Counted from the first letter of the stretch, positions 1,577 to 39,300 are shown. The stretch: 64,000 bases of DNA from Rebecca billardiae RCC1528 (GCA_965240325.2 OZ251238.1:310001-374000); one strand, 5' to 3'. Program-made: numbers and translations. Notes: generated by a model from the letters alone, not told the origin.

Positions 1577-2776
1577 ATGCCTTTGGCACCAGCACCGACC
1601 TCGCTCGCACCGCAGTGCTTCCGCACCCGCCCCCCGGCCCTCCGCAGCCCCGCGCCCGCCACACCGGCCACCATGCCCCCTTACCAGCACGGCTTTTTCC
1701 GCGACCGTCTCAACAGCAGGAGCGCCTTGAGCTTCTTCCCCTCTTCCAACAACTTCGAGCGCGGGCTGCAGGTGGAACGGCCGAGCACCCCCACCGCCAG
1801 GCGGGATGCGGGCCAGCAGATGTGCACGACGATGATCAAGCTGAGCGCGCGCTGCCTGAGCGACGTGGCGCCCAACTCGCAAGGCGGGCGACTGCTCTCA
1901 GGACTCACCCAGGACCCCAAAGGCAATAAGCACGTTTTCTCCTTCACCGGCTCGGTGCTCGAGAACATGACCATCTGCCGCCGCCTGGCCACCAGCCTGT
2001 GCATGCCGAACATTCTCACGGCGTGCACCACGGAGCTCACGCAGGAGATGCTCGCGCTGTCGGCGGCCGACCTCGCAACCCAGGCGAAGGACGTGTCCCT
2101 CACGCTCCCGGTTAGCCCCACGATGACGCTCGTGCAGTTTCACAGGGCCCTCTACGAGCAGATCGTGCCCGACATCAACAAGTACGTGACCAACGGTGAG
2201 CACGTCGAGACCAACATCTACTCCGGCGGTGTGAACCTGATCTTCCTCCGCCTGCGTTTCATGCCCATCGACCCCGAGCACCCCATCTTCTTCGCGCCGC
2301 TCAAGCCGAGCCGCCGCATCGCCGGCGCCGCCCGCGTCCCACACAACCTGTGGGGCGTGCCGCCCGCGCCGCCTGTGCCGCCCGCGCCGCCCGCCGCTGC
2401 GCGCCGCCCTGCTCCTCAGCCGGCCGACCAACAGGCGGCGGACCCCGCCGGCCCGGAGGCGGAGGAGCCCGAGGGGGAGGGTTCGGACGATGCCATCCCG
2501 CCACCCCAGCCACCAACCGCGGCCGCGCCGTCGGACGGGCCCGAGGTGCAACAGGCCAGGCCGGCGCTCGGGGAGTCCAACTACCGCCTGGTCCTGCCCC
2601 CCGGCGCCGCGGCAGCCGGCAAGCGCGCGGCGACCGAGCCGTCCACGCCGGCGGAGGAGGATGGGCCCTCCTCCGCTGGCGGGAGCGACGCCAAGCCGGC
2701 CAAGCAGGCTCGCACCGCGTCCCTCGGCGACCCCCCCCGTGACCTGGCTGCCGCCGCGCCGCAGTCGCTGGCGTAG
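1577..2776 (+). CDS. Unknown protein inside the inverted-repeat element: globular core plus Pro/Ala/acidic tail
   Basis: ORF of about 400 aa with strong GC3 bias and a normal amino-acid mix in the core (…GNKHVFSFTGSVLENMTICRRL…YEQIVPDINKYVTNGEHVETNIYSGGVNLIFLRLRF…). No family recognised. The start could be ATG 1577 or 1673. Confidence 0.55.
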   Translation: MPLAPAPTSLAPQCFRTRPPALRSPAPATPATMPPYQHGFFRDRLNSRSALSFFPSSNNFERGLQVERPSTPTARRDAGQQMCTTMIKLSARCLSDVAPNSQGGRLLSGLTQDPKGNKHVFSFTGSVLENMTICRRLATSLCMPNILTACTTELTQEMLALSAADLATQAKDVSLTLPVSPTMTLVQFHRALYEQIVPDINKYVTNGEHVETNIYSGGVNLIFLRLRFMPIDPEHPIFFAPLKPSRRIAGAARVPHNLWGVPPAPPVPPAPPAAARRPAPQPADQQAADPAGPEAEEPEGEGSDDAIPPPQPPTAAAPSDGPEVQQARPALGESNYRLVLPPGAAAAGKRAATEPSTPAEEDGPSSAGGSDAKPAKQARTASLGDPPRDLAAAAPQSLA

Positions 2777-2836
2777 AGCCGCGCGCGGCGCTGGCGCGCC
2801 AGACGCGCCCGGTTGGGCAGCGCAGGCACCCTCAGC

Positions 2837-2956
2837 GGCCAGGACGACGACTTCCTCAACGGCAAGGGCGACGACTTCCTCTGCGGCCAGGGCGACGACT
2901 TCCTCAACGGCAAGGACGACGACTTCCTCAACGGCAAGGGCGACTACTCCCTCAAC
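2837..2956 (+). repeat. 24-bp tandem repeat, 5 copies (GGCMAGGRCGACGACTTCCTCAAC)
   Basis: Read directly. One frame gives GQDDDFLN-GKGDDFLC-GQGDDFLN-GKDDDFLN-GKGDYSLN. Confidence 0.9.
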
Positions 2957-3248
2957 TCGGCAAGGCCACTAGGCCGCGCACACCGGCCCGGGCGACCACA
3001 TCCACTACCTGCACTACGGCATCAACTTGAACAGCCTCGGACGACGACGACACGGGCAACTACATGATGACCAAGGCCGACGACGACTGCAAAACAGCGG
3101 CATCCCCGGGCGCCTACTACCTCAGTGACCGTGTGATCAGCATCGGTTACGACGACTCCCTCACCCGCGGCCAACGCGCTCCGACATCCTCCATTAACTC
3201 CATTCAGTACTTCGACAGACGAATCAGGAGAGCTGCGCCCTCGTGCCT

Positions 3249-15054: not shown

Positions 15055-17901
15055 ATGGCCGACGGGCTTTCCAGGCTGCTCGCTTTTTCGGGGCCCCCCA
15101 AATTTTCGGAGATCGGCGGCATCGCCATGGACCGGCTGCTCGGCTGCGTCCCGCAGGACGACGCGAAGCGCCAGGCGGGCCCTGAGCTGCTCCCCCCGGC
15201 CGGCAGCACGCGCATCGCATCCCCCGAGCTGCGCGGCGTCACCCTCGCCCAGCTGCGCGCGCTGCTCGCCTTTGTCGACGAGCGCTGCGCCGCGGGCGAG
15301 TGGTTGGGCGCCGAGGGCGGCGCGCTGCGCTCAGACGAGGTGACCTTCTACGACCTGGAGCGCTGCGTGGCGGACATGCCGTTCCGCCGCGCTGCGCGCG
15401 GCTCCTCCATCGCCGAGGCGCTCGCCCCGCGCGCGCAGCGCCCGCGCTGGGTCGTGACGCACGCGTGGTCGCTGCGCGTGCGCTCGCTGCTGCGCGGCCT
15501 GGAGCAGCACGCGGCCGAGCGCGCGCTCGGCGAGGAGGCGCCGTACTGGATCGGCGCGCTCGCGCTCGGCCCGCACGAGCTCAGCGCCCCCGCGCCGCTC
15601 CGCGCCGACGGCGCCGTCGCGCGCGCCCTCGCCGGCCCGTTTGCGCGCGCCCTCGCGCTCGACGGCTGCGCGGGCACGGTGGCGGTCGTCGACGCGGACG
15701 GCGCGGCGCTCGGGCGGAAGTGGGTGCTGCTCGAGCTGTTCGTCGGGCTGACCGAGCCGGCCGAGGGCACGCCCCGCCTGGTCGACTGCTACGCCGTCCA
15801 GGATGCCGATGATCCGCACGGCCCGCCTTCGCCCACGCCGGGCACGCGCGGCGGCGGCTTTGGCGGAGGCGGCCCGCCTTCGCCTACGCCCGGCGCGCGC
15901 GGCGGCGGCTTTGGCGGAGGCGGCCCGCCTTCGCCCACGCCGGGCACGCGCGGCGGCGGCTTTGGCGGAGGCGGCCCGCCTTCGCCTACGCCCGGCGCGC
16001 GCGGCGGCGGCTTCGGTGGCGGAGGCGGCCCGCCGTCGCCCACGCCAGGCGCGCGCGGCGGCGGCTTTGGCGGCGGCACGGCGCGCAGCACCGGCGGCGG
16101 CACCGCGCGCCGCTCGCGCCGCAGCCGCAGGCCGCCAGCCGTCGTCGGGCTGACGGACGGGCCCGCCGAGATCGACGCTGCGCGCAACACGCGCAACCGC
16201 GGCGTGCGCGCCGAGCAGGCGGCGCGCGAGGCCGCGTTCCCCGGGGCCGTGCTGCGCGCCGCGCAGCGCGCCGAGCTCGCCTCCGCACGCGCGACGCGCG
16301 ACACGGACGGCGCGGCCATCGACGGCGCGGCGGCGCACGGCGCGGCGGAGGGTGTGCTGCCGCAGCTCGACTCGACAGTGCGCGCGCACTTCAGCGCGCG
16401 CGAGCTGGGGCTGTGCATGGTGGACGGCCCCGTGCGCGAGCTGCGCGGCCTCGCCGCCGAGCTGCGCGCCTCCGCGCTGCGGCGCGTGCTCGTGCACCCG
16501 CCGCCGCGCGCCGAGGCCCAGCAGCACGGGGGCGGCATCGCGCCGCTCATCGCCGCGCGCTACCTGGCGGAGGGCCTGCCGGAGAGCGCCGCCGAGATCG
16601 AGATCTCGGGCGTGGACGCGGGGGTGCTGCAGGGGGTCGGGCGCGTGCTGCGGCACGGCCGCGTGCGCGCGCTCTCGCTCACGCGGCTCAAGCTGCGCAA
16701 GTCCGACATCGAGCTGCTCGCGCGCGGCCTGCGCGTGGCCGCCGAGCGCGCCGCGGCCGACGCGGCCGCCGCCGACGCCGCCGACGCCGGCGCGAGGGCG
16801 CGCGAGCGGCCGCCTCCGTACGAGGGCCTGCACGAGCTCGTGCTGCAGGGCGCGCACCTGCGCGACGCGGCGCTGCCCGAGCTGTGCGCCGCGCTCGGCC
16901 GCCACGCCCGCCTGCGCGTGCTCTCGCTCGACTCCACAGGCCTGAGCGCGGACGGCGCCGCAGACGTGGCAGACGCGCTGCTCGGCGGCGTGCGCGGCCT
17001 GCGAGTGCTCACGCTGCACGCCAACGCGATCGGGCCGCACGGCGCGCGCGCGCTCGCGCACGCGCTCGAGGCGCAGCCGTCGCTGCGCGTGCTCACGCTC
17101 GACTCGAACGCGATCGGCGACGCCGGCGCCGCCGCGCTCTCGCGCGCGCTCGGCGCGCTCGGCGCGCTCACCCGGCTCGATCTCGACGACAACGAGATCA
17201 GCGATCTGGGCGCGCGCGCGCTCGGCGCCAGCCTCGCGCAGCAGGGGTCGCTGCAGCGGCTCTCGATCTCGGGCAACCCGCTGGGCGAGGGCGGCGGCTC
17301 GGAGCTCGTCGGCGCGCTCGAGCAGCACCTCGGGCTGCGCGCGCTCGAGCTCGACGACACCGGCCTGCGCGACGGTGGCGTGCGCGCGCTGTGCCACGCG
17401 CTGCGCGAGCACTCGCAGCTTGAGCAGCTGCGGCTCGCGGGCAACGAGCTCGGCGCCGCCGCGGGCGCCGAGCTCGCGCGCGGGCTCGGGCGGTTCGGCG
17501 AGGCGCTGCGCGAGCTCGATCTGTCGGGCAACCGGCTCGGCGACGCCGCCGCCGCCGAGCTCGCCGCCTCCCTCGGCCGGAACTGCCCCCGGCTCGAGTC
17601 GCTCGCCCTCGGGTACGGCAACGCGTGCGCCGATCGCGCGGCGCGCGCGCTCGGCGCGATGCTGCCACACACGCGCGCGCTGCACTCCCTGCAGCTGCGG
17701 CACAACGACGTGCGCGACGCGTCCGCGCTGGAGGAGGCGCGCGCGCACCACCCGCTCCCGCTGTCCCTCGACCTGCTCGGCAACCCGCTCGGAGAGCCGC
17801 CGCCCCAACGGCCGTTTGCGCCGGGCGGCTCGAGCGCGTCGCTCACGAGCGCGCTCGACGCGATGATGCACTCGTCGCCCTACCACGCACGGGCGTCATG
17901 A
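15055..17901 (+). CDS. N-terminal TIR/HET-like domain plus ribonuclease-inhibitor-type LRR protein
   Basis: Intronless 948 aa. The N-terminus has RGVTLAQL…WVVTHAWS…YWIGALALGPH…GRKWVLLE. The C-terminus has about 11 28-aa LRRs (LxxLxLxxNxIGDxGAxALxxAL). Confidence 0.8.
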   Translation: MADGLSRLLAFSGPPKFSEIGGIAMDRLLGCVPQDDAKRQAGPELLPPAGSTRIASPELRGVTLAQLRALLAFVDERCAAGEWLGAEGGALRSDEVTFYDLERCVADMPFRRAARGSSIAEALAPRAQRPRWVVTHAWSLRVRSLLRGLEQHAAERALGEEAPYWIGALALGPHELSAPAPLRADGAVARALAGPFARALALDGCAGTVAVVDADGAALGRKWVLLELFVGLTEPAEGTPRLVDCYAVQDADDPHGPPSPTPGTRGGGFGGGGPPSPTPGARGGGFGGGGPPSPTPGTRGGGFGGGGPPSPTPGARGGGFGGGGGPPSPTPGARGGGFGGGTARSTGGGTARRSRRSRRPPAVVGLTDGPAEIDAARNTRNRGVRAEQAAREAAFPGAVLRAAQRAELASARATRDTDGAAIDGAAAHGAAEGVLPQLDSTVRAHFSARELGLCMVDGPVRELRGLAAELRASALRRVLVHPPPRAEAQQHGGGIAPLIAARYLAEGLPESAAEIEISGVDAGVLQGVGRVLRHGRVRALSLTRLKLRKSDIELLARGLRVAAERAAADAAAADAADAGARARERPPPYEGLHELVLQGAHLRDAALPELCAALGRHARLRVLSLDSTGLSADGAADVADALLGGVRGLRVLTLHANAIGPHGARALAHALEAQPSLRVLTLDSNAIGDAGAAALSRALGALGALTRLDLDDNEISDLGARALGASLAQQGSLQRLSISGNPLGEGGGSELVGALEQHLGLRALELDDTGLRDGGVRALCHALREHSQLEQLRLAGNELGAAAGAELARGLGRFGEALRELDLSGNRLGDAAAAELAASLGRNCPRLESLALGYGNACADRAARALGAMLPHTRALHSLQLRHNDVRDASALEEARAHHPLPLSLDLLGNPLGEPPPQRPFAPGGSSASLTSALDAMMHSSPYHARAS
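15820..16077 (+). repeat. Coding minisatellite, about 51 bp x5 (GPPSPTPG[T/A]RGGGFGGG)
   Basis: Tandem repeat read directly within the LRR gene. Confidence 0.9.
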
Positions 17902-18097
17902 GTGGCCGCGCACGCCGGGGGCGGGGCCCGTCGCCGTCGCCGTCGCCGCGTAGGACGCCACCTGCCTAAAGACTCCGTATTAGGGAGCGAGCACTGATCG
18001 GCGCGCCATTCACAGCTCGCCCATATATATATATATGACATACCGTTGCCAACTCTGCTAAGTCCGAGTCTCACTCTCAGACTCAGTCGATCAGACT

Positions 18098-18670
18098 TCA
18101 GAGCGGCGGCAGCAAAGCCACGACCAGCAGCCTCCAGCTCGCAATCACTGTGGCTGAGCCAACGACAAAGCCAACCTCGCCGTCAAGAGGCAGCTGCAGC
18201 GCCGAACAGACCGCAAGGAGGGCCAGACTGGACCCCAGCCAGGCCGCGAACAGCGGGAGGATCGCCTGCGCGGAAGGCAGCGCTCGTGTCACGCTGATGC
18301 GGTATCCGCCGAGTGCCTCGACAATGGCCACCCACAGAGCAGCGAGTGCTAGGCCCTGCAGCGGCGCCGCAAACACGGGGGGCTCTTGTATGAACAGGGC
18401 CGGCTGGGCCTTTGCGAGAGGGGAAAGCCAGACGTCCACGAACCCCTGGACCGCGCCGTAGCCCACCAAGACGCAGGCATCGCCTCGCAGTGCCAGCGCG
18501 TCAGATTCGTCTCCACCGTTTGCAGAGAGCTGCGGCCACACGCGGCGCCCTGAGGTGGCGGCGTGCAACGGCCGACGGAGTTGCTGCTGATGAGACCACG
18601 CTGCCGCTTGCACCGCGAGAAGAAGGCCAAGACAGATCCGCCATGCCCGTCGGCTTTGAGATGCCGCCAT
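18098..18670 (-). CDS. Small multi-pass membrane protein, probably plastid-targeted (DUF3054-like)
   Basis: 190 aa: signal peptide (…LLLAVQAAAW), basic transit-like stretch, then about 4 hydrophobic segments starting GD and ending WR. Confidence 0.6.
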   Translation of the reverse strand: MAASQSRRAWRICLGLLLAVQAAAWSHQQQLRRPLHAATSGRRVWPQLSANGGDESDALALRGDACVLVGYGAVQGFVDVWLSPLAKAQPALFIQEPPVFAAPLQGLALAALWVAIVEALGGYRISVTRALPSAQAILPLFAAWLGSSLALLAVCSALQLPLDGEVGFVVGSATVIASWRLLVVALLPPL

Positions 18671-18734
18671 GCTGACGACCGACGACGACGCCTACGGTAT
18701 GGTTGTAGTAGTATGTTTTAGTACGGACGACGGT

Positions 18735-20549
18735 ATTGTCATTTGCTCTGGTTCGCAAGTTTGGGCCGAGCGCGGCGCCGCAGGGGGCAGAGGCCTCGAG
18801 GGCCTCCACCCCCCCCGACACCGCGCGCACCCAGGCCATGCCCACCCAGCAACCAGCCGGGTGGGAGGGCAGGGAGAAACAACTCCCAGAGGAGGGGCAG
18901 CCACCAGCGCCGCGGTGACCCAGCAGCCACGCCGGCCGCCGAGCCGCGGATGCAGCCAGCGAGCGCGCGCAGAGAGGCGCATCGCTTGCCAAGCTACTGC
19001 GCGGATCCGCGCCCACCCCCTGTCCGGGCCTGGCTCGGCTTGACGACCGGAAAACCTTCGGGCAGCCGGACCCGGGCTGCCAGCCCGCCCTCATGAGGGC
19101 TACCGGTGAGTTATACCCGCATAACCGAGCGGTTATACAACCATAACTCACTCGGTAGACCCACATGAGAGTAGATTGAGGTGGGGGCCGCGTTGATAAA
19201 CGCGTGAGGTGACTAGGTCACACCCCCGAAGCCGTCCAGGATGCGACGCCGACCAGAAAGGACTCGCCGATGCATTCGAGCAACTACGCCGACAGAAGCC
19301 GACCGCCTAGACGCCGAAAAGGAAGTACTCGATGGAGCACGTAGATAGACCGCAGGCGCTGGCAGCCGACGCCCTCCCCCAACGCAAGTTTGGGCCGAGC
19401 GCGGCGCCGCAGGGGGCAGAGGCCTCGAGGGCCTCCACCCAGAAGGAGGTGTGGAATGCCACACCCCGTAGGGGTGGTGGCCGGGGGCCCGAAGAGGCCG
19501 AGGCCGCCGGGGGTAGCGCGAGGACCGAAGGCGGCCGAGGCCCAGAGGGGCTCCCCGCAGGATTGTGTGAGGACGAACCCGACGGTAAGTGCGACGAGTA
19601 GGCACAAAGACATGCGCGGCGGCGGCGGCGCAGGCGGGAAGCAGGCGCGAGACACGCACGCGCACGCGTAGCGTCAGATAAGGTAGCAGGTCGCATCCCC
19701 ACACACAGCAGTGCACTGCAGACTGCAGAGGAGGCGGCAGAGAAGGAGAGAGCAGCACCCACCCGCCAGGCGATGAAGGCAAGCGAGACTGCGAAGCGTG
19801 AGAAGATTGCAGACGGGGACGCCTGGGAGCGGTTCCGAGGCGCCCCCATCGAAAGCAGAGCATGCGGAGATTGCAGACGGGGACGCCTCGAAGCGGTTCC
19901 GAGGCGCCCCCATCGAAAGCAGAGCATGAGAAGATTGCAGACGGGGACGCCCCGAAGCGGTTCCGAGGCGCCCCCATCGAAAGCAGAGCATGAGAAGATT
20001 GCAGACGGGGACGCCCCGAAGCGGTTCCGAGGCGCCCCCATCGAAAGCAGAGCATGGGACGATTGCAGACGGGGACGCCTCGAAGCGGTTCCGAGGCGCC
20101 CCCATCGAAAGCAGAGAGCACCCGGAGGGGTCCGAGGTGCCCTCGCAGAGAGCAGAAGCGACAGACAGCCCGATCGCGCGTTGGCAGCAAGCAGGGCAGG
20201 TGCACGAGTGGAGAGAGCGAGGGCTGAGGGCGGCCTACCGCCGACGCACACGCACCTGGAAGAAACAACTCCCAGAGGAGGGGCAGCCACCAGCGCCGCG
20301 GTGACCCAGCAGCCACGCCGGCCGCCGAGCCGCGGATGCAGCCAGCGAGCGCGCGCAGAGAGGCGCATCGCTTGCCAAGCTACTGCGCGGATCCGCGCCC
20401 ACCCCCTGTCCGGGCCTGGCTCGGCTTGACGACCGGAAAACCTTCGGGCAGCCGGACCCGGGCTGCCAGCCCGCCCTCATGAGGGCTACCGGTGAGTTAT
20501 ACCCGCATAACCGAGCGGTTATACAACCATTGTCATTTGCTCTGGTTCG
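18735..20549. mobile_element. Non-autonomous retroelement with split direct repeats (Penelope-like TOC1/MRC1 type, or Ngaro type) and a 21-bp TSD
   Basis: ATTGTCATTTGCTCTGGTTCG occurs at 18735-18755 and 20529-20549. A 58-bp repeat lies at 18754-18811 = 19383-19440 and a 270-bp repeat at 18875-19144 = 20261-20530. There is an internal 64-bp tandem array and no credible ORF. Confidence 0.8.
19801..20116. repeat. 64-bp tandem repeat x5, each unit hairpin-forming
   Basis: GATTGCAGACGGGGACGCC starts at 19805, 19869, 19933, 19997 and 20061. GGGGACGCCTCG pairs with CGAGGCGCCCCC. Confidence 0.95.
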
Positions 20550-20667
20550 AGTCGATGACCAATGATATGATATCATCCGCTTTTTTAAGGTTTTTAACGT
20601 TTTAACCACCCGGCCAAGCAAACACCCAAACACCCAACCCGTCCCTCAACTAGAGCCTTCGCCTCAC

Positions 20668-23600
20668 ATGCGCGCGGCGAAAGCGCGCCGGCGTGGCGGC
20701 CGCGCGCTCGCGGCGCTTGCGCTCGTGAGCGCGTGCCGTGCGCATCTAGTCGTGCGCGATGGCCCCGCGCAATTCCTCGGCCTCGAGCTTGTGGCCGGGC
20801 CGATGCGCTTCTCGCCCGCGCACTTTGACGTGCTCGCGCCGATGCTCGTCACGCGGCCGGGCGAGTGGGCGTACGACGCGTGCCCGCCGAGGTACATGGG
20901 CACGCGTGACCTGCGCGGCACGATCGTCGTGCACCTCAGTCCCGCCTTCGAGCGCTGCAGCCTCGAGCAGCACGCGCGCGGCGCGGGCGTGCTCGGCGCG
21001 CTTGGCTGGGCCGCGTTCAGCTTCGACGCGACCGCCGGCTTCGGGCGCGAGCCGGGCGGTATCCGGTACTGGAGCCACGCCGCCGACTCGCGCGACTTGC
21101 CCGAGCCCCCCGCCTTCGACCTGAACCAGCGCGCCGCGCTGCCGCTGATGACGCACCTGCGCGACCGCGGCGGCTCGGTGCGCGTGAGCGTGCGCCCGTC
21201 GCGCACGCCGTGGGAAGCGATGTGGGAGCACCCGCTGGCCATCGGCCTCGCCGCCGTCGTGGGCGTGCAGAGCGGGCTCAACGCGCTCTACGCCGTTTTC
21301 GCCCTCGCCCGCGTCATGCGCGACGTGGGTGGCCCCCGCATCGACGTAGCGCAGGCGGCCCTCGCGCTCGAGGCCGCGGCCAACGGCGGGCGCGTCGCCG
21401 CGCAGCTCAACCCGTTCCTCCGGCTGCGCTGGTACGACTACGAGACGGCGCTGCGGCTGCAGCTCGTGCCGGAGGTGCTGAGCACGTGCGCGACCGCGCT
21501 GCTACTCGTCTTCGTCGCGCAGGCCGCCGCCAACGCCGGCCTCGCCTCGCTGCGCGTGACGCGCCCCGCGTACCAGCGCGCGCTGTGCGCGCTCGTGCTC
21601 GCGCTGAGCGGGCTGCTCGCCGCGGCCGAGGTGACACGCGCGCTGGGCGCGCGGCTGCTCGGCGCGAACTCCCTGCGGGTCGTAATGGTTGCGGGCGCGA
21701 CCCTCCCGCTCGTCGTGGTGGCCGTCGCGCTCCACGCCGACCGCATGATCCGGCGCTCGCTCGCGGACGCGCCCGCGCTGCTCGTGCGCGCGCTGCTGTG
21801 GCGCGTGCGCACCTCGCTGCTGCTCTCGTGCCTCGCGGCCGGCGTGGGCGCCGCGTTCCCGATCGCGTACGTGCGGCCGTGGGTGTGCGTCGGCGTCTTC
21901 ACCGCGTACGCCTGCCTCTCCAACGCCACCTCGTACGTCCAGATCAGCGCCGTCGTCGGCTCCACGTCCCGCTTCAGCCCGCTAGCCAAGGCGGCGCGCG
22001 CGCTCGGCTCGCCCTGCGCGCCGCGGCTGCAGCATCTGCGGCCCGACCGAGGCCCGACCTCGTACGCCGGAGGGCGCCGCGTAGGGGCAAGCTCGGCGCG
22101 TGTCGGGCCGGACGCCCCCCTGACCGGCGTCGTGGGGCGTTTTGAGCCCGCCCGCCCCCCACGCGTGTCGAGCCGGACGCCCTCGCTGCGGGGGGGCTTC
22201 CCGGGTGGCGCATCGCGCGTGCGCGCGGCCAGCGTGGACCTCGGCGCAGAGGACGAGCTGTCGCCGCGCGGTGACGAGGGGCATTTGCTTCTGGGCGTGC
22301 AGCTGCGCCACCTCGAGGCGTGGTGCGACGAGCATGGCGTCACGCACGACATGACCTCCGCCGAGGTCGGCCGCATGGTCGCCGCGCTCACGCGCGAGAG
22401 CGGCCAGTCACTCGCCGAGGCGCACGCGCACGTGCGGCTGCCGGACGGCACCGGCGCGGTGGGCGAGGCCAACCTCTTCGTCAGCCACGCGCAGGCGTGC
22501 TCGTTCCGCCAGCTGCTCAGCGCGGTGCGGCTGCACGCCGCGTTCTGCAACCTCGACGAGCGCTCGCTGTTCCTCTGGCTCGACCTCGCGACCATCCGGC
22601 AGCACGACGTGCAGGCCGGCATCCGGCACATTGGCAATGTGATCTCGAGGATCGGCAGCATGGTGCTCGTGCTCGACCCGTGGCACTCGGCCGTCTCGCT
22701 CGGCCGTATGTGGTGCCTGTACGAGGTGGTGCAGTGCCGGCTGCACCCGCACGTCGAGCTGCAGCTCGCGCTGCCGCCCTCCGAGCTGGGCGACTTCCTC
22801 GCCGCGCTCGACAACGACGCGTCGCGCGTGCTCAAGACGCTCTCCTCCTTCGACTGCCGCACGGCCGCCGCGAGCGTCGCGGACGACCGGCAGCGGATCC
22901 ACGAGCTGATCGTCGCCACGTTCGCGCCGCCGAGCGAGCGCCCCAGCTCGCGGATGGCCCGGCACCACCTCAGCGCTGTGTCCAGCGCGGTCGCGGACGC
23001 GCTGAACCAAGCGAGCTTCCGCGCGCCCGGCTCCTCGACGAGCGCTGCGCGCTCGCGCGAGTGTGACGGTGCGGCGCTCGACGCGTTCAACGCGGAGGTG
23101 CGCAAGGCGCTGCTGCGCGCGCTCTCGCTCGCAAGCTGGCGCGGCGTCGGGCCGGCGCACTCGTCAAGGCGGTGCTCGCACTCGGACTCGCAGTCTGGGC
23201 CACCGCCCACCTCGTCCTCCGGGTCACGCTCCAACTCGCCATCCCCCGCCTCGACTCGCAAGTTCCCCCCACTCGGCCTTCGCTCCAACCCCAGCACACC
23301 CGCCATCCCACGGCGGCAGCCGCCGGACGACGCGGTGGCGTTGCCGCGCGCCGACGCGAGCCCGCCCGGCCAGGCGCAGCGCGCGATGTCGGAACCACAT
23401 GCGTGCGCCGACGGCAGCAGCAAAGGTATGGGCACCTGCACGGCCGCGGTGGGGCTAGTGGGCGCGGAGCGTTCGCACTCGATGCCATCGCCTGCGACGC
23501 GCGCAGCCGGCAGTGTGTCGGCCTTGCCCGTCGCAGCCGAGCCTACGCGAGGCCAAGCGGGCTTTGCTGATGGTTCCGATGCGCGCGCCGGCGGGCACGG

Positions 23601-23820
23601 CGAGATGCAGCACGACCTCGGGTCGCTGCGGGCAGCCGCGGGGCGCTCGCTACAGCGCGCTCTCGTCAGCGGCGTGGTGCGCGCAAAGAGGCGACCTCAA
23701 GGCGGCGCCCCCATCGCCGCTGTCGTCAGCCTCCCGGACAGCGGTTCGTCTGTCCTCCCCCGCCTCAGAGCACTCGCCGTCTCGCCTGTCGCGCGGGCCC
23801 CGCAGCCTCATGGCGACTGA
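20668..23820 (+). CDS. Receptor-like protein: signal peptide, PA-like ectodomain, 7 TM helices and cytoplasmic TIR/HET-like domain
   Basis: Intronless 1050 aa. The PA-like stretch is LRGTIVVH…CSLEQHARGAGVLGALG, followed by seven hydrophobic segments at about 21230-21960. The cytoplasmic part reads ANLFVSHAQ…FLWLDLATIRQH…IGSMVLVLDPW…LGRMWCLYE. Confidence 0.75.
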   Translation: MRAAKARRRGGRALAALALVSACRAHLVVRDGPAQFLGLELVAGPMRFSPAHFDVLAPMLVTRPGEWAYDACPPRYMGTRDLRGTIVVHLSPAFERCSLEQHARGAGVLGALGWAAFSFDATAGFGREPGGIRYWSHAADSRDLPEPPAFDLNQRAALPLMTHLRDRGGSVRVSVRPSRTPWEAMWEHPLAIGLAAVVGVQSGLNALYAVFALARVMRDVGGPRIDVAQAALALEAAANGGRVAAQLNPFLRLRWYDYETALRLQLVPEVLSTCATALLLVFVAQAAANAGLASLRVTRPAYQRALCALVLALSGLLAAAEVTRALGARLLGANSLRVVMVAGATLPLVVVAVALHADRMIRRSLADAPALLVRALLWRVRTSLLLSCLAAGVGAAFPIAYVRPWVCVGVFTAYACLSNATSYVQISAVVGSTSRFSPLAKAARALGSPCAPRLQHLRPDRGPTSYAGGRRVGASSARVGPDAPLTGVVGRFEPARPPRVSSRTPSLRGGFPGGASRVRAASVDLGAEDELSPRGDEGHLLLGVQLRHLEAWCDEHGVTHDMTSAEVGRMVAALTRESGQSLAEAHAHVRLPDGTGAVGEANLFVSHAQACSFRQLLSAVRLHAAFCNLDERSLFLWLDLATIRQHDVQAGIRHIGNVISRIGSMVLVLDPWHSAVSLGRMWCLYEVVQCRLHPHVELQLALPPSELGDFLAALDNDASRVLKTLSSFDCRTAAASVADDRQRIHELIVATFAPPSERPSSRMARHHLSAVSSAVADALNQASFRAPGSSTSAARSRECDGAALDAFNAEVRKALLRALSLASWRGVGPAHSSRRCSHSDSQSGPPPTSSSGSRSNSPSPASTRKFPPLGLRSNPSTPAIPRRQPPDDAVALPRADASPPGQAQRAMSEPHACADGSSKGMGTCTAAVGLVGAERSHSMPSPATRAAGSVSALPVAAEPTRGQAGFADGSDARAGGHGEMQHDLGSLRAAAGRSLQRALVSGVVRAKRRPQGGAPIAAVVSLPDSGSSVLPRLRALAVSPVARAPQPHGD

Positions 23821-28916: not shown

Positions 28917-31679
28917 ATGGCAAGCGACTCCAACTCCGTGCGGGCGGGCCAGCTCGGGAAGGGCGGTGGACTGTCCCGGCTGGGTGCCGGCACGGAGGAC
29001 CGGCTTCTCGCGCTGAAGGAGAAGGCCGAGCGCGCGAATAAGTCGCGCGAGGAGGAGGAGGGCGAGGTCGAGGCGAGCTTCCGCGCGGCGTGCCTCGAGA
29101 TCATCCTGTACCTCCTCTTCGTCGTCATCTTTGCGATCGTGACCTGGGTGCGCGGCGGGCGGCGAGCGCGGCTTGGCCGGCCCCGCGCGGGCGTACGCGC
29201 GTGATAGTCCCGTGCGTGCGCGGCGGCGCGCGCGCCGACGGCTTGCTGCGCGCACACCACGCGCCTCCGCCCGCCGCGCCGCGCTCGCAGATGAGCGCCA
29301 TCCACGTCGCCTACCCGTACGCCAGCAAGATCAAGGACGTGGTGTACGGCGACCCGCCTGAGTCGTTCGAGGACATATTCAGCGAGGTGCGCGCCTGCTC
29401 CCCGCGCGTCCGCGCGCGCCGGCGCGCCGCGGCCGATCCGCGCGCGCCCGCCGGCCGGTGCCGCGCCACGCGGCGCCGTGCGCGCAGACCCAGTTCTGGG
29501 ACTACCTGGAGGGCCACCTCGTGAACCAGCTCTTCGTGAACACGGACTACCGCGGGACCGAGCTGCCCCGCCACCGGCTCGGCTACGTCCTCGAGGTCGA
29601 CAAGATGATCGGCGCGGTGCGCTTCGAGCAGAAGCGCGTGAAGCTCGACCGCCGGCGCTGCGCCGTGCCGCCCGTGTACGAGGAGCTGATCCCAGCTTGC
29701 TACCCGCGGATACGCACAGAGTTCGACGTGGATAGCCAGGCGTTCGGGCCGGAGGACCGGTTCGAGCCGGTCTCGACTGGCTTCTTCGTCGACGTCGGCT
29801 TCAAGCGCTTCGTCGAGGACATCCCGAACGACGCGACGCCGGACGAGGCGATCGAGCGGCTCGAGTCCCTGCGCAACGACTCGTGGGTCGATCTGCAGAC
29901 GCGCGAGGTGCACGTCAAGTTCACGGTGTACAACCCGGCGGTCGACCTGTTCTGCTACGTGGACCTCGAGTTCGCCTTCTTACACACCGGCGGCATCGCG
30001 GTGAGCTCCAAGTTCAGAACCATCTCCATGCTGCGGCAGTGGCTGCTGCTGACGCCCACGCGCATCTTCTTCCCGCCCTCGGTCGAGCACGAGCTGCTGT
30101 TTGTGCTCGAGCTCGTCTTCCTGCTGATCGTGCTCTTCATGCTGGTGGGCGAGGTGCGGCAGTTCGCGAGGTTAGGGTTCTACATGTACATCTCGTCCGT
30201 GTGGAACGTCATCGACGTGCTCAACCTCTCGCTCTTCATCATCTTCTTCTTCTACCGCTTCTTCTTCATCGGTGCGGCGCACGGAGGGGCGCGCCCGCGC
30301 GCGCGCTTTTTCGCGCGCCACTCGCCACTCGCGCGCTCAGCCGCCGCTGCCGCTCGCGCGCGCCGCACGCGCTGGGGCGCGCAGGGCTCACGTCGCTGCT
30401 CAACTTCCGCCCCGCGCCGGACACGTTCACCGAGTTCGGGTACATGGCCGAGCTCGTGTACCAGTCGAACAACTTCACCGCGTTCAACTGCGTGCTCACG
30501 TACATGAAGATGTTCAAGTACCTGCAGTTCTCCACGCGGCTCAGCCAGCTCACGCACACGCTCACCGAGGCGAGCGAGGACCTGGCGGGGTTCCTCTTCA
30601 TGTTCCTGCTCGTCTTCATGGCGTACGCCTTCTCGTTCCACATGGCCTTCGGCATGGACGTCGCGTCCTTCCGCGACTTCACCAACTCGTACTTCACGCT
30701 CTTCCTGATCATTCTCGGAGAGTTCGACTTTGAGGAGCTGCGGCTGTCCAACGACCTGCTCGGCCCGCTGCTCTTCATCTCGTACATCGTGATCGTGTTC
30801 CTGATCCTCTTCAACATGTTCCTCGCGATCATCGGCGACGCGTACGTGCGCGTGAAGGAGCGCACCTCCGCGTACGAGGACCCCTTCATGCGCAACCTGC
30901 GCGCGGGCCTCAACGCGCGCAAGCAGCGCCGGCTGCGCAGGCTCGAGGCAACCATCGACCGCGCGGACGACGACGGCGTCATCACGGCCAAGGAGATCCG
31001 CGACATCGAGATGGACCTGCGCGAGATCCTGGGCGACGCGGAGGTGCGCGCCGAAGCGCGCGGCGCCGGGCGCGCAGCGCGCGCGCGAGGTGGCGCGCGC
31101 GGCGCTGAGGCACGCGCACGACGCGCGGCTGATGCGCGCGGCCCCGCCCCGGCCCCGCCCCGCCGCTCCCGCGCTGCTGCGCGCGCGCAGGCGGAGGACA
31201 TCCTCGCAAAGGTGGCGGACGACGACACCACCTACTTCTCGCAGGAGGAGGCGAAGAAGCTGATGGAGCGCATCGTCGAGTCGCGCGAGAAGCTCGAGCG
31301 CGAGGCGAAGCGCACCGCCGAGTCGGACGGAAACCGCATGCTGCCCGAGGAGATTGAGGCCAAGGACCCGGCGTTTGCGCTGCGCATCTCCGCGGCCAAG
31401 GCGGCGCGCGAGAAGGTGGAGCAGATCGAGCAGACGCAGCGCCAGCTCTTCGACTCGGTGCAGTCGAGCCAACGGGTGCGCCGCCGCGGCACGTGCGCGC
31501 CGGCGCATCCCGCCTCGCCCCGTCGCCCCGCCCTCTCAGCGCCCGCGCCGCGCTCGCCGCGCCCGCGCTCCGCCCGGCGTGCGCAGGCGGTGATGCTCAA
31601 GATCAACTCACTCACCGACACGATGGACATCATCGCCAACAAGGTGGGCGCGCACTCGACGGTGACGGGCAGGAGGTAG
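28917..31679 (+). CDS. PKD2: Polycystin-2 (TRPP) cation channel
   Basis: Introns at 29148-29290, 29387-29487, 30272-30384, 31044-31190 and 31476-31586. Motifs include IGAVRFEQKRV, WVDLQTREVHVKFTVYNP, WNVIDVLN, KMFKYLQF, LFLIILGEFDF and LFNMFLAIIGDAY. The tail is EF-hand-like/coiled-coil. Confidence 0.93.
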
Positions 31680-33313: not shown

Positions 33314-36300
33314 TCACCGCCGGCCGGAGCGCTTGAGGCCGAGCGCGGGCCCCGGCGTCGAGCCGCGAGAGGAGCCTTCGGCATCGTGCTCGGAGGCGTC
33401 GTCGTCGCGCTCCTCGCCAATGGCGCCCATGCCGAGCTTCACCGAGGGCGAGCGCGGCGTGGAGAAGGGCGTCCCCTGCGCGCCGTCGCCGTCGTCGAGC
33501 GCCTCGACGTTCATCCCATCGCCCTGCTCGTCGCTCGTGCGCGAGCTGCGCGCGCTGGGCCCGCCGAGCACCTCCTGCACCGAGACCTTCCAGTCGCCGC
33601 TGATCGCGCCGACCACGCGCGTGGTGTCGGGCGAGTCGGCCGTGTCACGCGGGTTGAAGAGCTGCCGCGTCGGCCGGCGCTCGTTGCGCCTGTGCACGCC
33701 GGTCGTGTCCGGATCGGCGTGGCTGCGGCGGAGGCCGGACACCTTGCGGGCGCGCGTGAGGCCGCCGCCCGCCGACGCGCCCAGCGCCGCCGACGCGGCG
33801 CCGCCGCCGCCCACGCTGCCGGGCGGCAGGGGGAGCGTGTCGCCGCCGCCCTCCATCCCGGCGCGCGAGCTCTTTCGCCTGGGCGCGCCGCCAGCCGCGC
33901 CGCCGCCCTGCGAGATCTCGGCGAGGCGAGATTGCTTGCGGCCGCGCGTCAGCCCACCACCCCCCTCGACGGCGGCCGCGGCGTCGGCGGCGAGGTCGCC
34001 GCTGTTGTTGCCGCCGCCGCCGCCAAAGGCGAGGCGCGAGTTGAGCCGCCTGCGCGCGAGCTGGCCGCTGCCCGGATGCGGAGGCGAGCTGCCGCCGCCC
34101 TCGTTGATGTCGGCGAGGCGCGAGGCCTTGCGCCCGCGCGCAATCCCGCCGCCGCCGCCGCCGCCGCCGCCCAGCCTGTCCTCCGCCTCCGGGCTCTCGT
34201 CGACCGGCTGCATCGCGCGCGACATGCGCGTGCGCGCGCTGGGCTCGCGGCGCGAGCGCCCGAACACCCAGTTGCTGAAGTCGCCCGACTTCGCCGCCCA
34301 GTCGCCGCTCATCTTCTTGTCGTGCTTGGCGGCGCCGTGGTGCAGCTGCAGCGGCTCGTGCGGAGGCTCCTCCTCGACCGGCTCGTCCGCGTCCTCGCGC
34401 CCGGGCCCCGACTTGGCCCAGTCGAGGGCGGCGGTGGAGACGGAGTACTCGAAGCGGTCGGTGTCCTGCTCGGCCGCGACGACCTCGTCCGTCTGCATCC
34501 GCCCGCGGCGCAGCCCGCCCGGGTTCGCCAGGCTGGACGTGCCCATGCGCGGGCGGCGCAGCACGCCGCGCTCGCCCGCCACCGGCGAGGCGGGTCCGGG
34601 CGAGGCGAGCGGCGTGCCGTTGCCGTCGTACGACTTCTTGCGCGGGCGCCTGATGTGCTGGTTGAGGTGCGGCGCGCCGGCGATCGCCGCGCCGATGTGG
34701 TTGGCGCCCATGTCGACGCCGAAGCTCGCGAGCGTGTGCCCCGCCGCCTCCACCTTGGGGTCGTTCGGCGAGTCGCACGTGCGCTTTGCGATCTCCCACT
34801 CGATGCGCGCGACGTCGTATGGCAGCTTGAACTTGTGCGCGAGCCGCACGGCCTCGCCCCACATCTTGAGCGCCTCGTAGCGGCGGTCGAGGAGCCAGGC
34901 GATCCCGCCCCTGTACAGCAGGAAGCGCGGCGTCGCCGCGCGGAAGCGCGACGCGAACAGCTCGAGCTGCCCCACCGCCTCGGCGGCCAGCTGCTGGTTG
35001 GTCGCGTTGGGCTCGCGCCCGAACGCCTCGACAAACACGTGCGCGATGTGCGAGTACGCAAAGAAGAGGAGGAACTGGGAGGGCATGCGGATGCGGCGCA
35101 TCTCGAGGAGCGAGATCTCGGCGGAGGCGAGCGCGGCGAGCAGGTCGTTCGCGCACAGCAGCTTCGCCATCGCGACGCAGCCGTGCATCGAGACGATCAG
35201 CGGGACAGAGCCAGTCGACTCGAGCCGCCCCTCCAGCCGCTCGAGCTCGGCGGTGGCGGTCTGCACGGCCGAGTGGCGGCCGAGCATGAGGAGCGCGGCG
35301 ACGCGCGTGACGGCGAGCAGCGCGTACATCTGCACGTCCTTCCGCCCCTCCGCCGAGCGCGCCGCCTGCGTGAGCAGCGTCTGCGCCTCCTCCAGCTCGC
35401 CCTGGCACATGAGCACGAGCGCCTTCTGGTTGGCCGACTCCTCAAAGCGGCGCCACATGCCCAGCTCGAGCGCCTTGTCCATCGTGAGCTGGAAGGCCTC
35501 GCACGCCGCGGCCCACTCGCACAGCTCGACGGAGCAGAGCATCCCCTTCATCATCATGCAGTACAGCGTCGTCGGCTCGCGCCGGTTGCGCTCCTCCTCC
35601 GCCGCCTCGGGCAGCAGCTCGCAGATGGCCAGCGCTTCCTTCTGCAGGCGCAGCGCCGTCACGATCGAGCCGGTGCGGCCGTGCGCGAGCGCGGCGGAGG
35701 AGAGCGAGCGCGCGAGCTGCGCGCCGCCCACGCGCGCCGCCACGTCGAGCCCGCGCAGCGTGGCGATGTCGTGCGCGAGCACGTCGCCCATGAAGTAGAA
35801 CGCGCGAGACGCCATCTGGTACCCGAACGCGGTCAGCTCGCACGACAGCTGGCTGGGCGGCGCCGAGCGGAGCGCGCGCGGCGTCTTGGAGCGGATGCCC
35901 AGCGGCATGTTGGCCCACGCGAGCTCGATCGCGAGGATCGCGCGCTTCCGCGCCGCCGAGCCGAGCGGCAGCGGCATGTTGACCACCTCGAGCAGCTCCT
36001 CGAGCGCCTCCATCGCCTCGGCGACCTGGCCGATGCGTAGCGCCGCGTCGGCGAGCGCGGCCGCGTACCCGGCGTGCTTCTCGACGGTGACGCCGAGCTC
36101 GACGCGCTCGTCGGGCGTGCACTTGTGCACGATCGTGAGCACCTCGTTGAGGAACGAGACCGCCTCGTGGTTCGCGTACTGCTTCAGCGCCACCTCCGCG
36201 CACAGCTCGAAGTAGCGCACCGCCTCGCCGTCGAGCTCCGCGCGCTGCCAGTGGTGCGCCAGCACCGGGTAGAAGGACGGCAGCTGCTCCTGGTACTGCT

Positions 36301-39300
36301 CCTCGATCCACTGCGCCACCGCCGTGTGCAGGCCGCGGCGCTGCTGGAACGGCAGCCGCTCGTACACCACGTCCTGCGGCACGCGCGCGCGCGCGCGCGC
36401 ACGCCGGCGGCGCGAGGGGCGCGTGAGACGCGCGCTCGTGGCGCCGCCGCCTGCGCCGCGGCCCGCGCCGCCGCTTGCGGGCGCGCTCTGCGCTGCGCTG
36501 CGCACCCGCACGAGCGCCGACTTGAACGAGTGCGTGTAGAACTTGGAGTTCTCGCACGGCACGAGCAGGCCCATCCCGACGAGCTCGCCCAGGATGCTCG
36601 GCACCTCCGACTTGGAGATGCCCACCTCGGGCAGCATGTGCTTCAGCATCTGCGCGCGCGGACGCGCGCCGCGCGCGCGAGCGCGCGGCGCGGGGCGTGT
36701 GAGGCCGCGGCGCACCGCACCGCCGCCGCGCGCCGCGCGCGCGGCAGCGCACACACCTCGTCGACAAAGTCGTTGCCCGCGACCGACGCGCACTTGAGCG
36801 CCATCAGGTACTTGCGGCCCAGCCGGTCGATGCGCGAGACGATGGCTTGCTCCACCTGCCGTGCGCGCGCGCGCGCGCGTGCGCACGGAGGGCGGCGCGG
36901 GGCAGCGCGTCAGCATGCTGCGCGCGCCGCCGCCAGCGCCGCGGCGCGCGCGCGCGCGCGCGCGCGGCGCGCACCGAGTCCGGGATCTTCTCGCCCCCCT
37001 TCCCGTCCGTGTTGATGTGCACCACGCCCTCCTGCACCGTGAGCAGCCCCTGGTCCTTGAGCAGCTTGACGAGCTCGAGGCAGAAGAAGGGCGAGCCCGC
37101 GCTCTTGGTGCCCAGCAGCTTCGCCGCCTTCTGCGAGAGCGAGCGCGCGCCGAGCTGGTTGCGCGCGATGCGCACGAGCTCGGCGGGCGACATCGGGCCG
37201 AGCGACACGTGCAGCGACGTCTCCTGGTTCAGAATCGTCACGAGGTCGGGCGGCAGCCCCACGCCGGACATGGCCTGCGAGGTGACGAGCAGCGCGCACG
37301 CGCCCTGCGCAGAGAGCGAGATCGAGTTTGAGCCGCGCTTGGGCGCGCCGCTCTGGCCGGCGGCGGTGGCGCCGGGCGCGGCGTCGGCGCTCGGCAGCTC
37401 GGTCACCTCGTCGCCGCTGTCCGCCTCGCCCGTCGCCGCCGCCGCCGTGCCCGCCGAGTCGGAGAGCGCGGCGATCGCGAGCAGCAGCGTCCACGAGGCG
37501 CTGTCGAAGAAGTGCACGTCCTCCATCACGATCACGGTGGGCGCGCGGCGGGAGACGGTGGAGAGCACGTGCACGAGCATCGAGTTGATCGCCTCCGCCT
37601 TCACGTCGTCCGCCATCGCCAGCGTCGCGGGCGTGTGCCACATGCTCAGCCCCAGCACCGGGTTGAGCAGCGACGCGTGCTCGACGTACTCCACTGGCAG
37701 CAGCTCGGCGACGCGGCCGCGCATCGCCACGGCCGCGCGCTCGTTCTCGCCGCCCTGGTCGTCCGTGCGCGGCCCGGTGTTCGGGATGTCGAAGATGCGC
37801 CGGAAGATCGCCTTCCACGGGTACAGCAGCGTCGACGACTCGGTCGACGAGCCGCGCGACGCGAGGATCACCGCCTCGGCGCGGAAGGAGAGCAGCCGCT
37901 TCTGTGCCTCCTCGACAAGCCGAGACTTGCCCAGGCCCGCGTCGCCCACGACGACGACGGTGCGCTGCCGCGCGAGCTCGGCCTTGTTGCGCGCGGGCTC
38001 CTCCTCGGCGTCGTCCGGCTCGAGCGGCGGCGCGAGGCCCTCCGCGCCCGTGATCGCGAGCAGCGCCTCCACGATCGCATGCACCTCCTGCACGCGGCCG
38101 ACAAACTCGGACGCGCGCGCGACCGCGGACGAGCGCCGCTCCGAGTCGTTCGGGTTTGGCGTCTGCTTCTCGTCGTTCTCCTCCTGCTCGAGCTCCATCT
38201 CGTACGGCTCGAGCTGCGCGAACGGGCGGAAGACGGGCACGGGCTCGTCCTTGCCCTTCACCTTGATCGGCTTGAGCACGTCCCAGTCGATCATCTTTGC
38301 GCACTTGGAGTAGGTCTCCTCGTCGCAGTAGACCTCGTTGGTGGCGTTCGACATGTACCGCGCGGCCATGTTCACCTTGTCGCCGTACTCGGTGTACTCG
38401 CAGCGGTGCTCCGCGCCGACGCAGCCGATGAAGACATGCCCAGTCGTCACGCCGATGCACGCCTTCAGCCGCAGCTGCCGCATCGCGTCGCGGATCGCCA
38501 TGCCGCACAGCACCGCGCGCGTCGGGTCGTCGGTGTGCAGGAAGGGCGGCAGCCCAAACGTGATCTTGGTCACCGTCCCCTTGTCGTCGATCGAGATGCG
38601 CGTGATCGTGCCCTCGTACTTGCCCGCAGCGTTCATGATCGCGAGCACCGCCTGCGCGCGGCGCGGCGCGGCGCGGCGCGGCGCGGCGAGCGTCAGCCGC
38701 CGAGCCGAGCGCGGCGGCGGCGGGCGAGCGGGCGCGGCGGGCGCGGCGGGCGTGCGGCCGAGCGAACGCGAGCGAGCGCGCGCGCGTGCGCGCGCACCTG
38801 CTGCAGCTTGCCCACCGAGTCGGTCGAGTTGAGCCGCAGGCGCGTGATGCGCACGAACATCATCGTCGCCTCGCGGAACTCGGTCGAGTACTGCAGCGAC
38901 GACGCGTGCAGGTGGTGGCGCACCGGCCCGGCCGTGTACACGCGCAACGAGTCGAGCAAAGCCTCGCCGCGGCGCGAGAGCAGCTTGCTCTGCATCTGGT
39001 GCACCCACTCGCCGCGCGGCGTGCCCGAGGCGAGCAGCGGCGGCGGCGTGAAGTTGCCCAGCCGGGTCAGCCTGCGGAACCCCTTCCCGTCCCTCGCCAC
39101 CACCTCCGGGTCGGTCACCTCCGTCCCCTCCGGCTTGCGCTTGCCCTCCTCGAGCAGCTCCCAGACCGTCGGGCCGATCACGACCTCGCCGTGGCCGGCG
39201 ATGCCCTCGGCGCAGGACATCTCGTCGAGCGGCGGGCCGGCGACGACGAACTCGCGGCGCTGCCGGTTGCCCACGTCGATGCCGATCCCGCGCCCCGCGC

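Follow-up and report, generated by a model that had tools for sequence, protein, structure and literature searches.

Paired plant receptors of the RPS4/RRS1 type are encoded by neighbouring genes that lie head to head, keep their linkage and specify an NB-ARC nucleoside triphosphatase (NTPase) in addition to the TIR domain. TIR domains with NADase activity carry a WxxxE motif with a catalytic Glu on helix C (PMC10641520). In marine phytoplankton, TIR genes have been tied to virus resistance only recently: in the haptophyte Gephyrocapsa huxleyi, TIR genes that respond to infection by the virus EhV encode both membrane proteins, in which several transmembrane helices or an extracellular part precede an intracellular TIR-fold domain that keeps the Glu, and cytosolic proteins that lack a nucleotide-binding site (NBS); the products have been proposed to act as antiviral receptors or signal producers (PMC12489294). 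A remote relationship connects TIR with the HET domain, homologues of which occur in haptophytes, stramenopiles and green algae (Dyrka et al., PMC4986451). Here we analyse two neighbouring open reading frames (ORFs), ORF1 and ORF2, in a 64,000-nucleotide stretch of the genome of the haptophyte Rebecca billardiae RCC1528 (GCA_965240325.2 OZ251238.1:310001-374000; G000:C21:310001-374000 in our numbering). This stretch is hereafter the window, to which all positions refer unless another contig is named. A preliminary description had presented the two genes as a candidate innate-immune pair whose products share a TIR/HET-like domain and may act together. We recover the shared domain and find no genomic support for the pairing: on balance, ORF1 and ORF2 probably encode independently acting members of a very large eukaryotic family, likely single-chain receptors, that lie side by side by chance.

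ORF1 (15055-17901; 948 amino acids) and ORF2 (20668-23820; 1,050 amino acids) are uninterrupted open frames on the plus strand that translate without stops. The shared domain of about 180 residues lies at 15214-15780 in ORF1 (plus strand; residues 54-242) and at 22270-22800 in ORF2 (plus strand; residues 535-711). The motifs on which the preliminary description had based the parallel were located: GVTLAQL (residues 61-67), VVTHAW (133-138) and GRKWVLLE (220-227) in ORF1, and GVQLRHL (543-549), FVSHAQ (604-609) and GRMWCLYE (679-686) in ORF2. The Glu that it saw kept in both is E227 of ORF1 (W223-x-x-x-E227; codon 15733-15735) and E686 of ORF2 (W682-x-x-x-E686; codon 22723-22725).

Direct comparison by BLASTP of ORF1 residues 1-252 with ORF2 residues 535-811 gave a weak match (27% identity over 172 residues, E = 5e-4). 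Profile-profile alignment with hhalign gave a probability of 98.2% and E = 4.4e-14 over 139 columns, the input profiles being built from 13 copies of the ORF1-type ('A') subfamily and 15 of the ORF2-type ('B') subfamily, all single-exon, from six-frame genome searches with each domain. Despite the weak pairwise score, the two domains are therefore, as judged by their profiles, homologous beyond chance, and the earlier parallel, which non-homology would have undone, holds. The blocks that align in both subfamilies, those from which the preliminary description had quoted, are G-V/I-T/S-L close to the N-terminal end, S-x-x-E, F-V-S-H-A/W, W-x-D/C, V-D and R-x-W-x-x-x-E. Of 56 domain hits in the alga's own genome, 54 keep the Glu of the last block, as do 180 of 190 external domain instances. 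Conservation of about 90% or more in the own-genome hits was found for this Glu, the Trp four positions before it, the Arg two before that Trp, the His of S-H, the Trp on strand B and the Asp ending strand C; the same six residues are about 80-95% conserved in the external instances, which come from 150 proteins.

At the sequence level, the domain falls outside existing Pfam families. Searching both isolated domains against Pfam with hmmscan at E ≤ 10 returned no family, TIR and HET included. Scans of the full-length proteins matched no family in ORF2 and leucine-rich repeat (LRR) families only in ORF1, and a scan of the N-terminal half of ORF2 returned nothing for the shared domain. A whole-genome search with PF13676 (TIR_2) found 24 other places, neither the ORF1 nor the ORF2 locus being among them. 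The alga thus also has ordinary TIR genes, and the family of the shared domain is distinct from them in sequence. The corresponding search with PF06985 (HET) reached a best E of 0.17, at other loci, with no match on either domain; against 20 short external family members, the HET model matched one, at E = 0.075. Searching all PDB chains with the family profile yielded only a match to a methyltransferase (E = 0.24), which was rejected as chance. Since neither the TIR nor the HET model of Pfam matches, the name TIR/HET-like that we use refers to fold and motif, and we assign the domain to neither family. The label used in the preliminary description therefore stands for the TIR-like fold and for a WxxxE on the helix after the third strand, and not for membership of TIR or HET.

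Predicted structures point to a TIR-like fold. An AlphaFold2 model of the ORF2 domain, with 28 paralogues in the alignment, reached a predicted local distance difference test score (pLDDT) of 94.5 and a predicted template modelling score (pTM) of 0.90. In a Foldseek search of this model against the PDB, nearly all top ranks were TIR domains (RPPT-TIR, SARM1, MAL, AbTir, TRR-2 and RPP1), with probabilities of 0.8-0.99, E-values of 0.03 or worse and TM-scores of 0.4-0.5; for RPPT, SARM1, MAL and AbTir the probabilities are 0.9-0.99 and the E-values 0.03-0.1. A structure search independent of Foldseek placed SpbK, MyD88, TRR-2, SARM1, ThsB and IL-1RAcPb on top (Z 6.2-6.7, root-mean-square deviation 3.3-3.9 Å, 93-103 residues aligned). 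Below the TIRs came nucleoside 2-deoxyribosyltransferases, SEFIR and DprA, which we take to have the same general fold. All of these matches fall within model residues 65-177: the first ~60 residues of the domain form a helical extension specific to the family, and the TIR-like alpha/beta core follows. For the model of the ORF1 domain (pLDDT 90.2), TIRs again rank first, with Z 4.4-4.9 and alignments confined to strand A through helix C. In both models, W-x-x-x-E sits on the helix after the third strand. From the aligned ranges (ORF1 model 76-182 against SARM1 561-650), the ORF1 Glu would be level with E642 of SARM1 if helix C is aligned without gaps.

Several points weigh against this placement. 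The structural scores are modest, and the search tool warns that Z < 8 may mean a common arrangement only; the Foldseek E-values are 0.03 or worse for the ORF2 model, and the Foldseek result for the ORF1 model is insignificant; and Pfam, as described above, offers no TIR or HET match. What the models suggest lies in the consistent TIR-first ranking of both, at scores below the level of a firm fold assignment.

The comparison with TIR NADases (SARM1, plant RPP1 and RPS4, AbTir, ThsB, SpbK) accordingly yields likeness and difference. The best matches of our models to this class span strand A to helix D for ORF2 and strand A to helix C for ORF1, a near-invariant Glu occupies the WxxxE after the third strand, and the domain is fused to sensors (LRRs, tetratricopeptide repeats (TPRs), ankyrin repeats or membrane regions) in large expanded families. 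Unlike the TIR NADases, the present family is matched by no Pfam TIR model, scores modestly in structure and bears the N-terminal helical extension of ~60 residues. The fungal HET domain (PF06985, the effector domain of the HET-E/D/R NLRs) offers a second likeness. In alignments of the family, strand A carries S-H, strand B W-x-D/C and helix C R-x-W-x-x-x-E, an arrangement that resembles the three-block HET pattern (strand A, W-x-D...Q, R-x-W-x-x-x-E), and family members are often fused to ankyrin repeats or TPRs. In contrast to HET, the family is not found by the Pfam HET model in this genome, and unlike in the fungal HNWD proteins, the domain adjoins repeats or a membrane region without a NACHT between them.

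The two proteins place the domain in different contexts. ORF1 consists, from N to C terminus, of the TIR/HET-like domain, Gly/Pro-rich repeats and LRRs of the ribonuclease-inhibitor (RNI) type. The LRRs occupy approximately 16825-17754 (plus strand) and account for the Pfam matches in the C-terminal third (LRR_6, E = 8e-17; LRR_4, E = 2e-11). A hydropathy scan found no hydrophobic segment in ORF1, and Pfam detected no NB-ARC or NACHT NTPase, the hallmark of NLR and STAND proteins, between domain and repeats in either ORF1 or ORF2. Judged from its sequence, ORF1 encodes a cytosolic protein that joins the domain to LRRs and lacks an NTPase, as the preliminary description had it, and in lacking NB-ARC or NACHT at that position it differs from TIR receptors. 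The low-complexity linker between domain and LRRs (15808-16104, plus strand; residues 252-350), read from the translation, comprises five tandem units of about 17 residues, each a Pro/Ser/Thr-rich part followed by a Gly-rich part; the five near-perfect copies look like a recent in-frame repeat expansion.

ORF2 runs from a signal-like start through an ectodomain of ~160 residues and a multi-pass membrane region to the TIR/HET-like domain and a Ser/Pro/Ala-rich low-complexity tail. The hydrophobic region was delimited by hydropathy at 21223-22047 (plus strand; approximately residues 186-460) and is kept in 47 loci of the genome and in the metagenome proteins P0001 and P0002; four segments exceed the strict hydropathy cut-off (approximately residues 266-295, 305-323, 338-356 and 384-402). 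The signal-like start is likewise conserved in paralogues and in P0001 and P0002. The earlier reading of ORF2 as a membrane receptor with the domain on its C-terminal side is in line with this layout. The ectodomain has no match in Pfam, nor in the PDB by sequence. Neither protein has the layout of a Toll-like receptor: the ectodomain of ORF2 has no Pfam match, LRRs included, and is followed by a multi-pass membrane region, and the LRRs of ORF1 lie in a protein without a hydrophobic segment. A single gene spanning both frames was considered and rejected, as a stop codon ends ORF1 and ORF2 has its own signal-like start.

Both layouts recall G. huxleyi TIR genes as these are described, ORF2 in having a membrane or extracellular part before a TIR-fold domain with the Glu, ORF1 in being cytosolic without an NBS; in contrast, the G. 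huxleyi genes were identified through HH-suite matches to TIR families of Pfam, which the Pfam hidden Markov models (HMMs) do not detect in the present family, and no LRR or NBS was found in them (PMC12489294), whereas ORF1 and at least 13 of its paralogues carry LRRs.

The domain is greatly expanded in this genome (41 contigs, 72 Mb, G+C 60-82%). A profile of 28 copies gave 152 exon-level matches, which cluster into at least 98 loci, 26 of them ORF1-type and 72 ORF2-type; the figure is a lower bound, as 150 of 196 candidates were scored. Architectures, also lower bounds, were read from 1.5 kb flanks on either side of each domain. Among 54 paralogue frames delimited in this way, 14 contain LRR_6, one contains TPRs and none contains an NTPase family (full list of 21 families). 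ORF1-like LRRs occur at 13 distinct other ORF1-type loci. The N-terminal half of ORF2, that is, ectodomain and membrane region, was found at 47 loci, at 44 of which it immediately precedes an ORF2-type domain. At the other three (C17:182 kb, C29:1379 kb and C21:476 kb, the last at G000:C21:475923-476921), the membrane body stands without a detected domain nearby. The ORF2 ectodomain and membrane body make up a large receptor-like family.

The family also extends well beyond this alga. A word-based protein search had found two ORF2-like relatives only; a full HMM search with the family profile in public data then returned 9,654 cluster representatives at E ≤ 1e-3, 5,295 of which reach E ≤ 1e-10. 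External relatives occur in haptophyte, diatom, chrysophyte and green-algal data, with sources including a chrysophyte, the green alga Tetraselmis, MMETSP transcriptomes and a chytrid fungus, whose member bears the name 'Kinesin light chain 3' on account of its TPRs. Ankyrin repeats occur in 15 of the 48 best external hits, TPRs in 12 and LRR_6 in three; the 25 most frequent of the 42 families found in these hits include no NTPase and no Pfam model of the domain itself. The metagenome proteins P0001 and P0002 have the whole ORF2 layout. Look-ups in a protein atlas gave unnamed haptophyte and diatom clusters only, and no useful named cluster. In the external proteins P0003-P0152, about 200 domain instances were counted in 150 proteins, many of which carry two or three tandem copies per chain, unlike ORF1 and ORF2.

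Given a family of this size, the closeness of ORF1 and ORF2 has to be judged against random placement. The genes are co-oriented and lie 2,766 bp apart, matching the ~2.8 kb first reported. Between them lies a young, high-copy mobile element (18735-20549, strand not assigned) that occurs at least 40 times in the genome, many copies being ~100% identical over ~1,777 bp. Its insertion is therefore recent, as had been proposed for 1.8 kb of the gap; the element makes up ~1.78 kb of the present distance, which was ~1 kb before it arrived. Measured from domain to domain, the distance of 7.1 kb is the closest among the at least 98 loci (the next are 13.1, 14.4 and 18.1 kb). Random placement of 98 loci in 72 Mb predicts 0.95 pairs within 7.1 kb and at least one in 62% of simulations (P = 0.62); within 50 kb, 10 pairs of any kind were observed against 6.6 expected (P = 0.13). 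For typed pairs, consisting of one ORF1-type and one membrane-type locus, one was observed within 7.1 kb against 0.22 expected (P = 0.20) and three within 50 kb against 1.6 (P = 0.21). Of the 44 membrane-type loci, 42 have no partner of the other type within 15 kb, and the same holds for 24 of the 26 ORF1-type loci.

The history of the two genes differs as well. ORF2 has four close paralogues, at C1:2551-2554 kb, C13:19-22 kb, C25:1172-1175 kb and C29:101-104 kb, with domains 94, 91, 72 and 75% identical and N-terminal halves 89, 86, 60 and 59% identical to those of ORF2, respectively; among the scored loci, none of the four has a family member within 40 kb. ORF1 is without a close paralogue, its nearest relatives, on contig 10 and on contig 7 at 2574 kb, being 44-45% identical. 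Nucleotide homology of the nearest ORF2 copy stops ~50 bp past the ORF2 stop codon, and the ORF2 duplication unit is therefore the gene alone. Joint duplication of the pair was accordingly rejected, given a gene-sized unit and four close paralogues of ORF2 against none of ORF1. Recurrent above-chance linkage, by which paired receptors are recognised, was seen neither in the paralogues nor on the two short metagenome contigs that carry an ORF2-like gene; these contain no ORF1-like sequence in flanks of 0.7-2.4 kb upstream and 0.7-6.7 kb downstream. The closeness of ORF1 and ORF2 is best explained as what chance predicts in a dispersed family of at least 98 loci and is not evidence of a pair. 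The preliminary description had itself proposed a genome-wide count of the domain as the check on adjacency, and that count returned essentially the outcome on which its pairing falls: an expanded family with adjacency at chance level. The claim that the two genes act together as an immune pair therefore lacks genomic support (at least 98 loci, P = 0.62, no linkage in close paralogues) and should not be carried forward as such.

We nevertheless weighed how the two genes might form a two-component receptor system through heterotypic contact of their domains, comparable to paired plant TIR receptors or to a Toll-like receptor with its adaptor. TIR domains commonly act through homotypic assembly, and the genes lie on the same strand, 2.8 kb apart and ~1 kb before the transposon insertion. 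A further point on this side, and one that counts against chance adjacency, is a second close typed pair on contig 7, with an ORF1-type LRR gene at G000:C7:2417287-2417951 (+) and a membrane-type gene at G000:C7:2430475-2432623 (+), 14 kb apart domain to domain. With it, two typed pairs fall within 14.4 kb against 0.45 expected (P = 0.075, not far from significance), and in both the window and the contig 7 pair the two genes share an orientation and the ORF1-type gene lies upstream. The contig 7 ORF1-type gene, however, ranks only about fifteenth among ORF1 paralogues, the nearest (45%) being another gene, and the two pairs do not appear to derive from a single ancestral pair; we take the contig 7 pair as a hint and not as evidence. 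The resemblance to RPS4/RRS1 is limited to two neighbouring genes with a TIR-fold domain in each that could heterodimerise, whereas ORF1 and ORF2 are arranged in tandem, not head to head on a common promoter, encode no NTPase and show no linkage in paralogues. Together with the any-pair statistics, the many typed loci without a partner, the ORF2 paralogues without an ORF1-like neighbour and the short external contigs without an ORF1-like gene, this makes a two-component system unlikely. A broader version, in which ORF1-type cytosolic LRR proteins and ORF2-type multi-pass membrane proteins form two-gene modules in the window and on contig 7, a surface receptor and a cytosolic sensor co-assembling through heterotypic domain contacts, seems to us quite improbable; if true, such modules would give a haptophyte a system of paired innate-immune receptors that contains no NTPase.

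Two further alternatives concern the nature of the sequences themselves. The domain might be a non-enzymatic TIR-fold module, used for adaptor contacts or oligomerisation or as a cell-death module of the HET kind, with its Trp and Glu serving structural roles. Many animal TIRs serve as adaptors, the ORF1 model matches TIRs only from strand A to helix C, and one family member has the weak Pfam HET match noted above (E = 0.075). However, near-invariance of the Glu together with Arg, Trp, His and Asp over thousands of divergent members fits an active site better than a packing surface, and the WxxxE Glu is the catalytic residue in every TIR whose activity has been assayed (PMC10641520). We therefore regard a purely structural role as possible yet doubtful. 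That both frames are chance long ORFs produced by the very high G+C content has next to no probability. At 72-79% G+C, long ORFs do overlap in several frames here (for example 15331-17886 on the minus strand, 851 codons' worth of amino acids), but the plus-strand frames have significant Pfam LRR matches, dozens of diverged paralogues that keep the conserved residues and thousands of external homologues, including ORF2-like proteins of the same full architecture. By this homology the plus-strand frames are real genes, and the chance-ORF reading is already refuted.

Under the favoured reading of independently acting family members, the sensor part of each protein would control self-association of its TIR-like domain, the sensor being the cytosolic RNI-type LRRs in ORF1 and the ectodomain with the multi-pass membrane region in ORF2. 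Ligand sensing would lead to self-association, upon which the Glu-centred pocket might cleave NAD+ or a related nucleotide, and this cleavage could produce a signal or deplete and kill the cell. Cleavage of NAD+ or another nucleotide is proposed by analogy with TIR enzymes; activation by oligomerisation and an immune role of both proteins we infer from the same analogy. The scheme draws on established TIR enzymology and on the link between haptophyte TIR genes, a part of which encode N-terminal membrane regions, and virus resistance (PMC12489294). The homology of the domains, their modestly scored resemblance to the TIR fold, the residue conservation, the architectures, the family size and the absence of recurrent linkage are what the present analysis shows.

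About 100 loci of a TIR-fold, HET-like domain in this alga thus escape standard annotation. In at least 44 the domain is joined to a multi-pass membrane receptor body, and in at least 14 it is joined directly to RNI-type LRRs, with no NTPase. The family counts thousands of members, found in protists, among them haptophytes, chrysophytes and green algae, and in a chytrid fungus. Should the Glu be catalytic, the family would represent a major unannotated class of single-chain receptor-enzymes and could bear on cell death and antiviral defence of marine phytoplankton.

Further features of the window lie downstream of ORF2. The STAND/TPR cyclase that the preliminary description had brought into the same context is real, spanning 33314-39380 on the minus strand, 9.5 kb past ORF2, but nothing ties it to ORF1 and ORF2. 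It is represented by two frames identified by Pfam, one (36804-39380, minus strand) with an adenylate/guanylate cyclase domain (Guanylate_cyc) and an AAA_16 STAND ATPase, the other (33314-36916, minus strand) with TPRs; they overlap by ~110 bp and probably belong to one gene with an intron or a change of frame. An open frame at 29883-31679 (plus strand) contains a polycystin-type cation channel domain (Pfam PKD_channel, E = 5e-37; Ion_trans, E = 2e-13).

The mobile element between ORF1 and ORF2 has a second subfamily, ~94% identical over element positions 20-1386. An internal segment of 300 bp (positions 408-706) also matches just outside one end of many copies, which suggests that the element has a terminal or split repeat. 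Among the metagenome relatives, the ORF2-like gene on an ENA contig (L061:2196-3010) shifts frame in the middle of the domain, as seen from the two tblastn pieces at 2196-2555 and 2678-3010. Because of this mid-domain change of frame, which stems from an intron or a frameshift, the called protein P0002 ends in out-of-frame residues.

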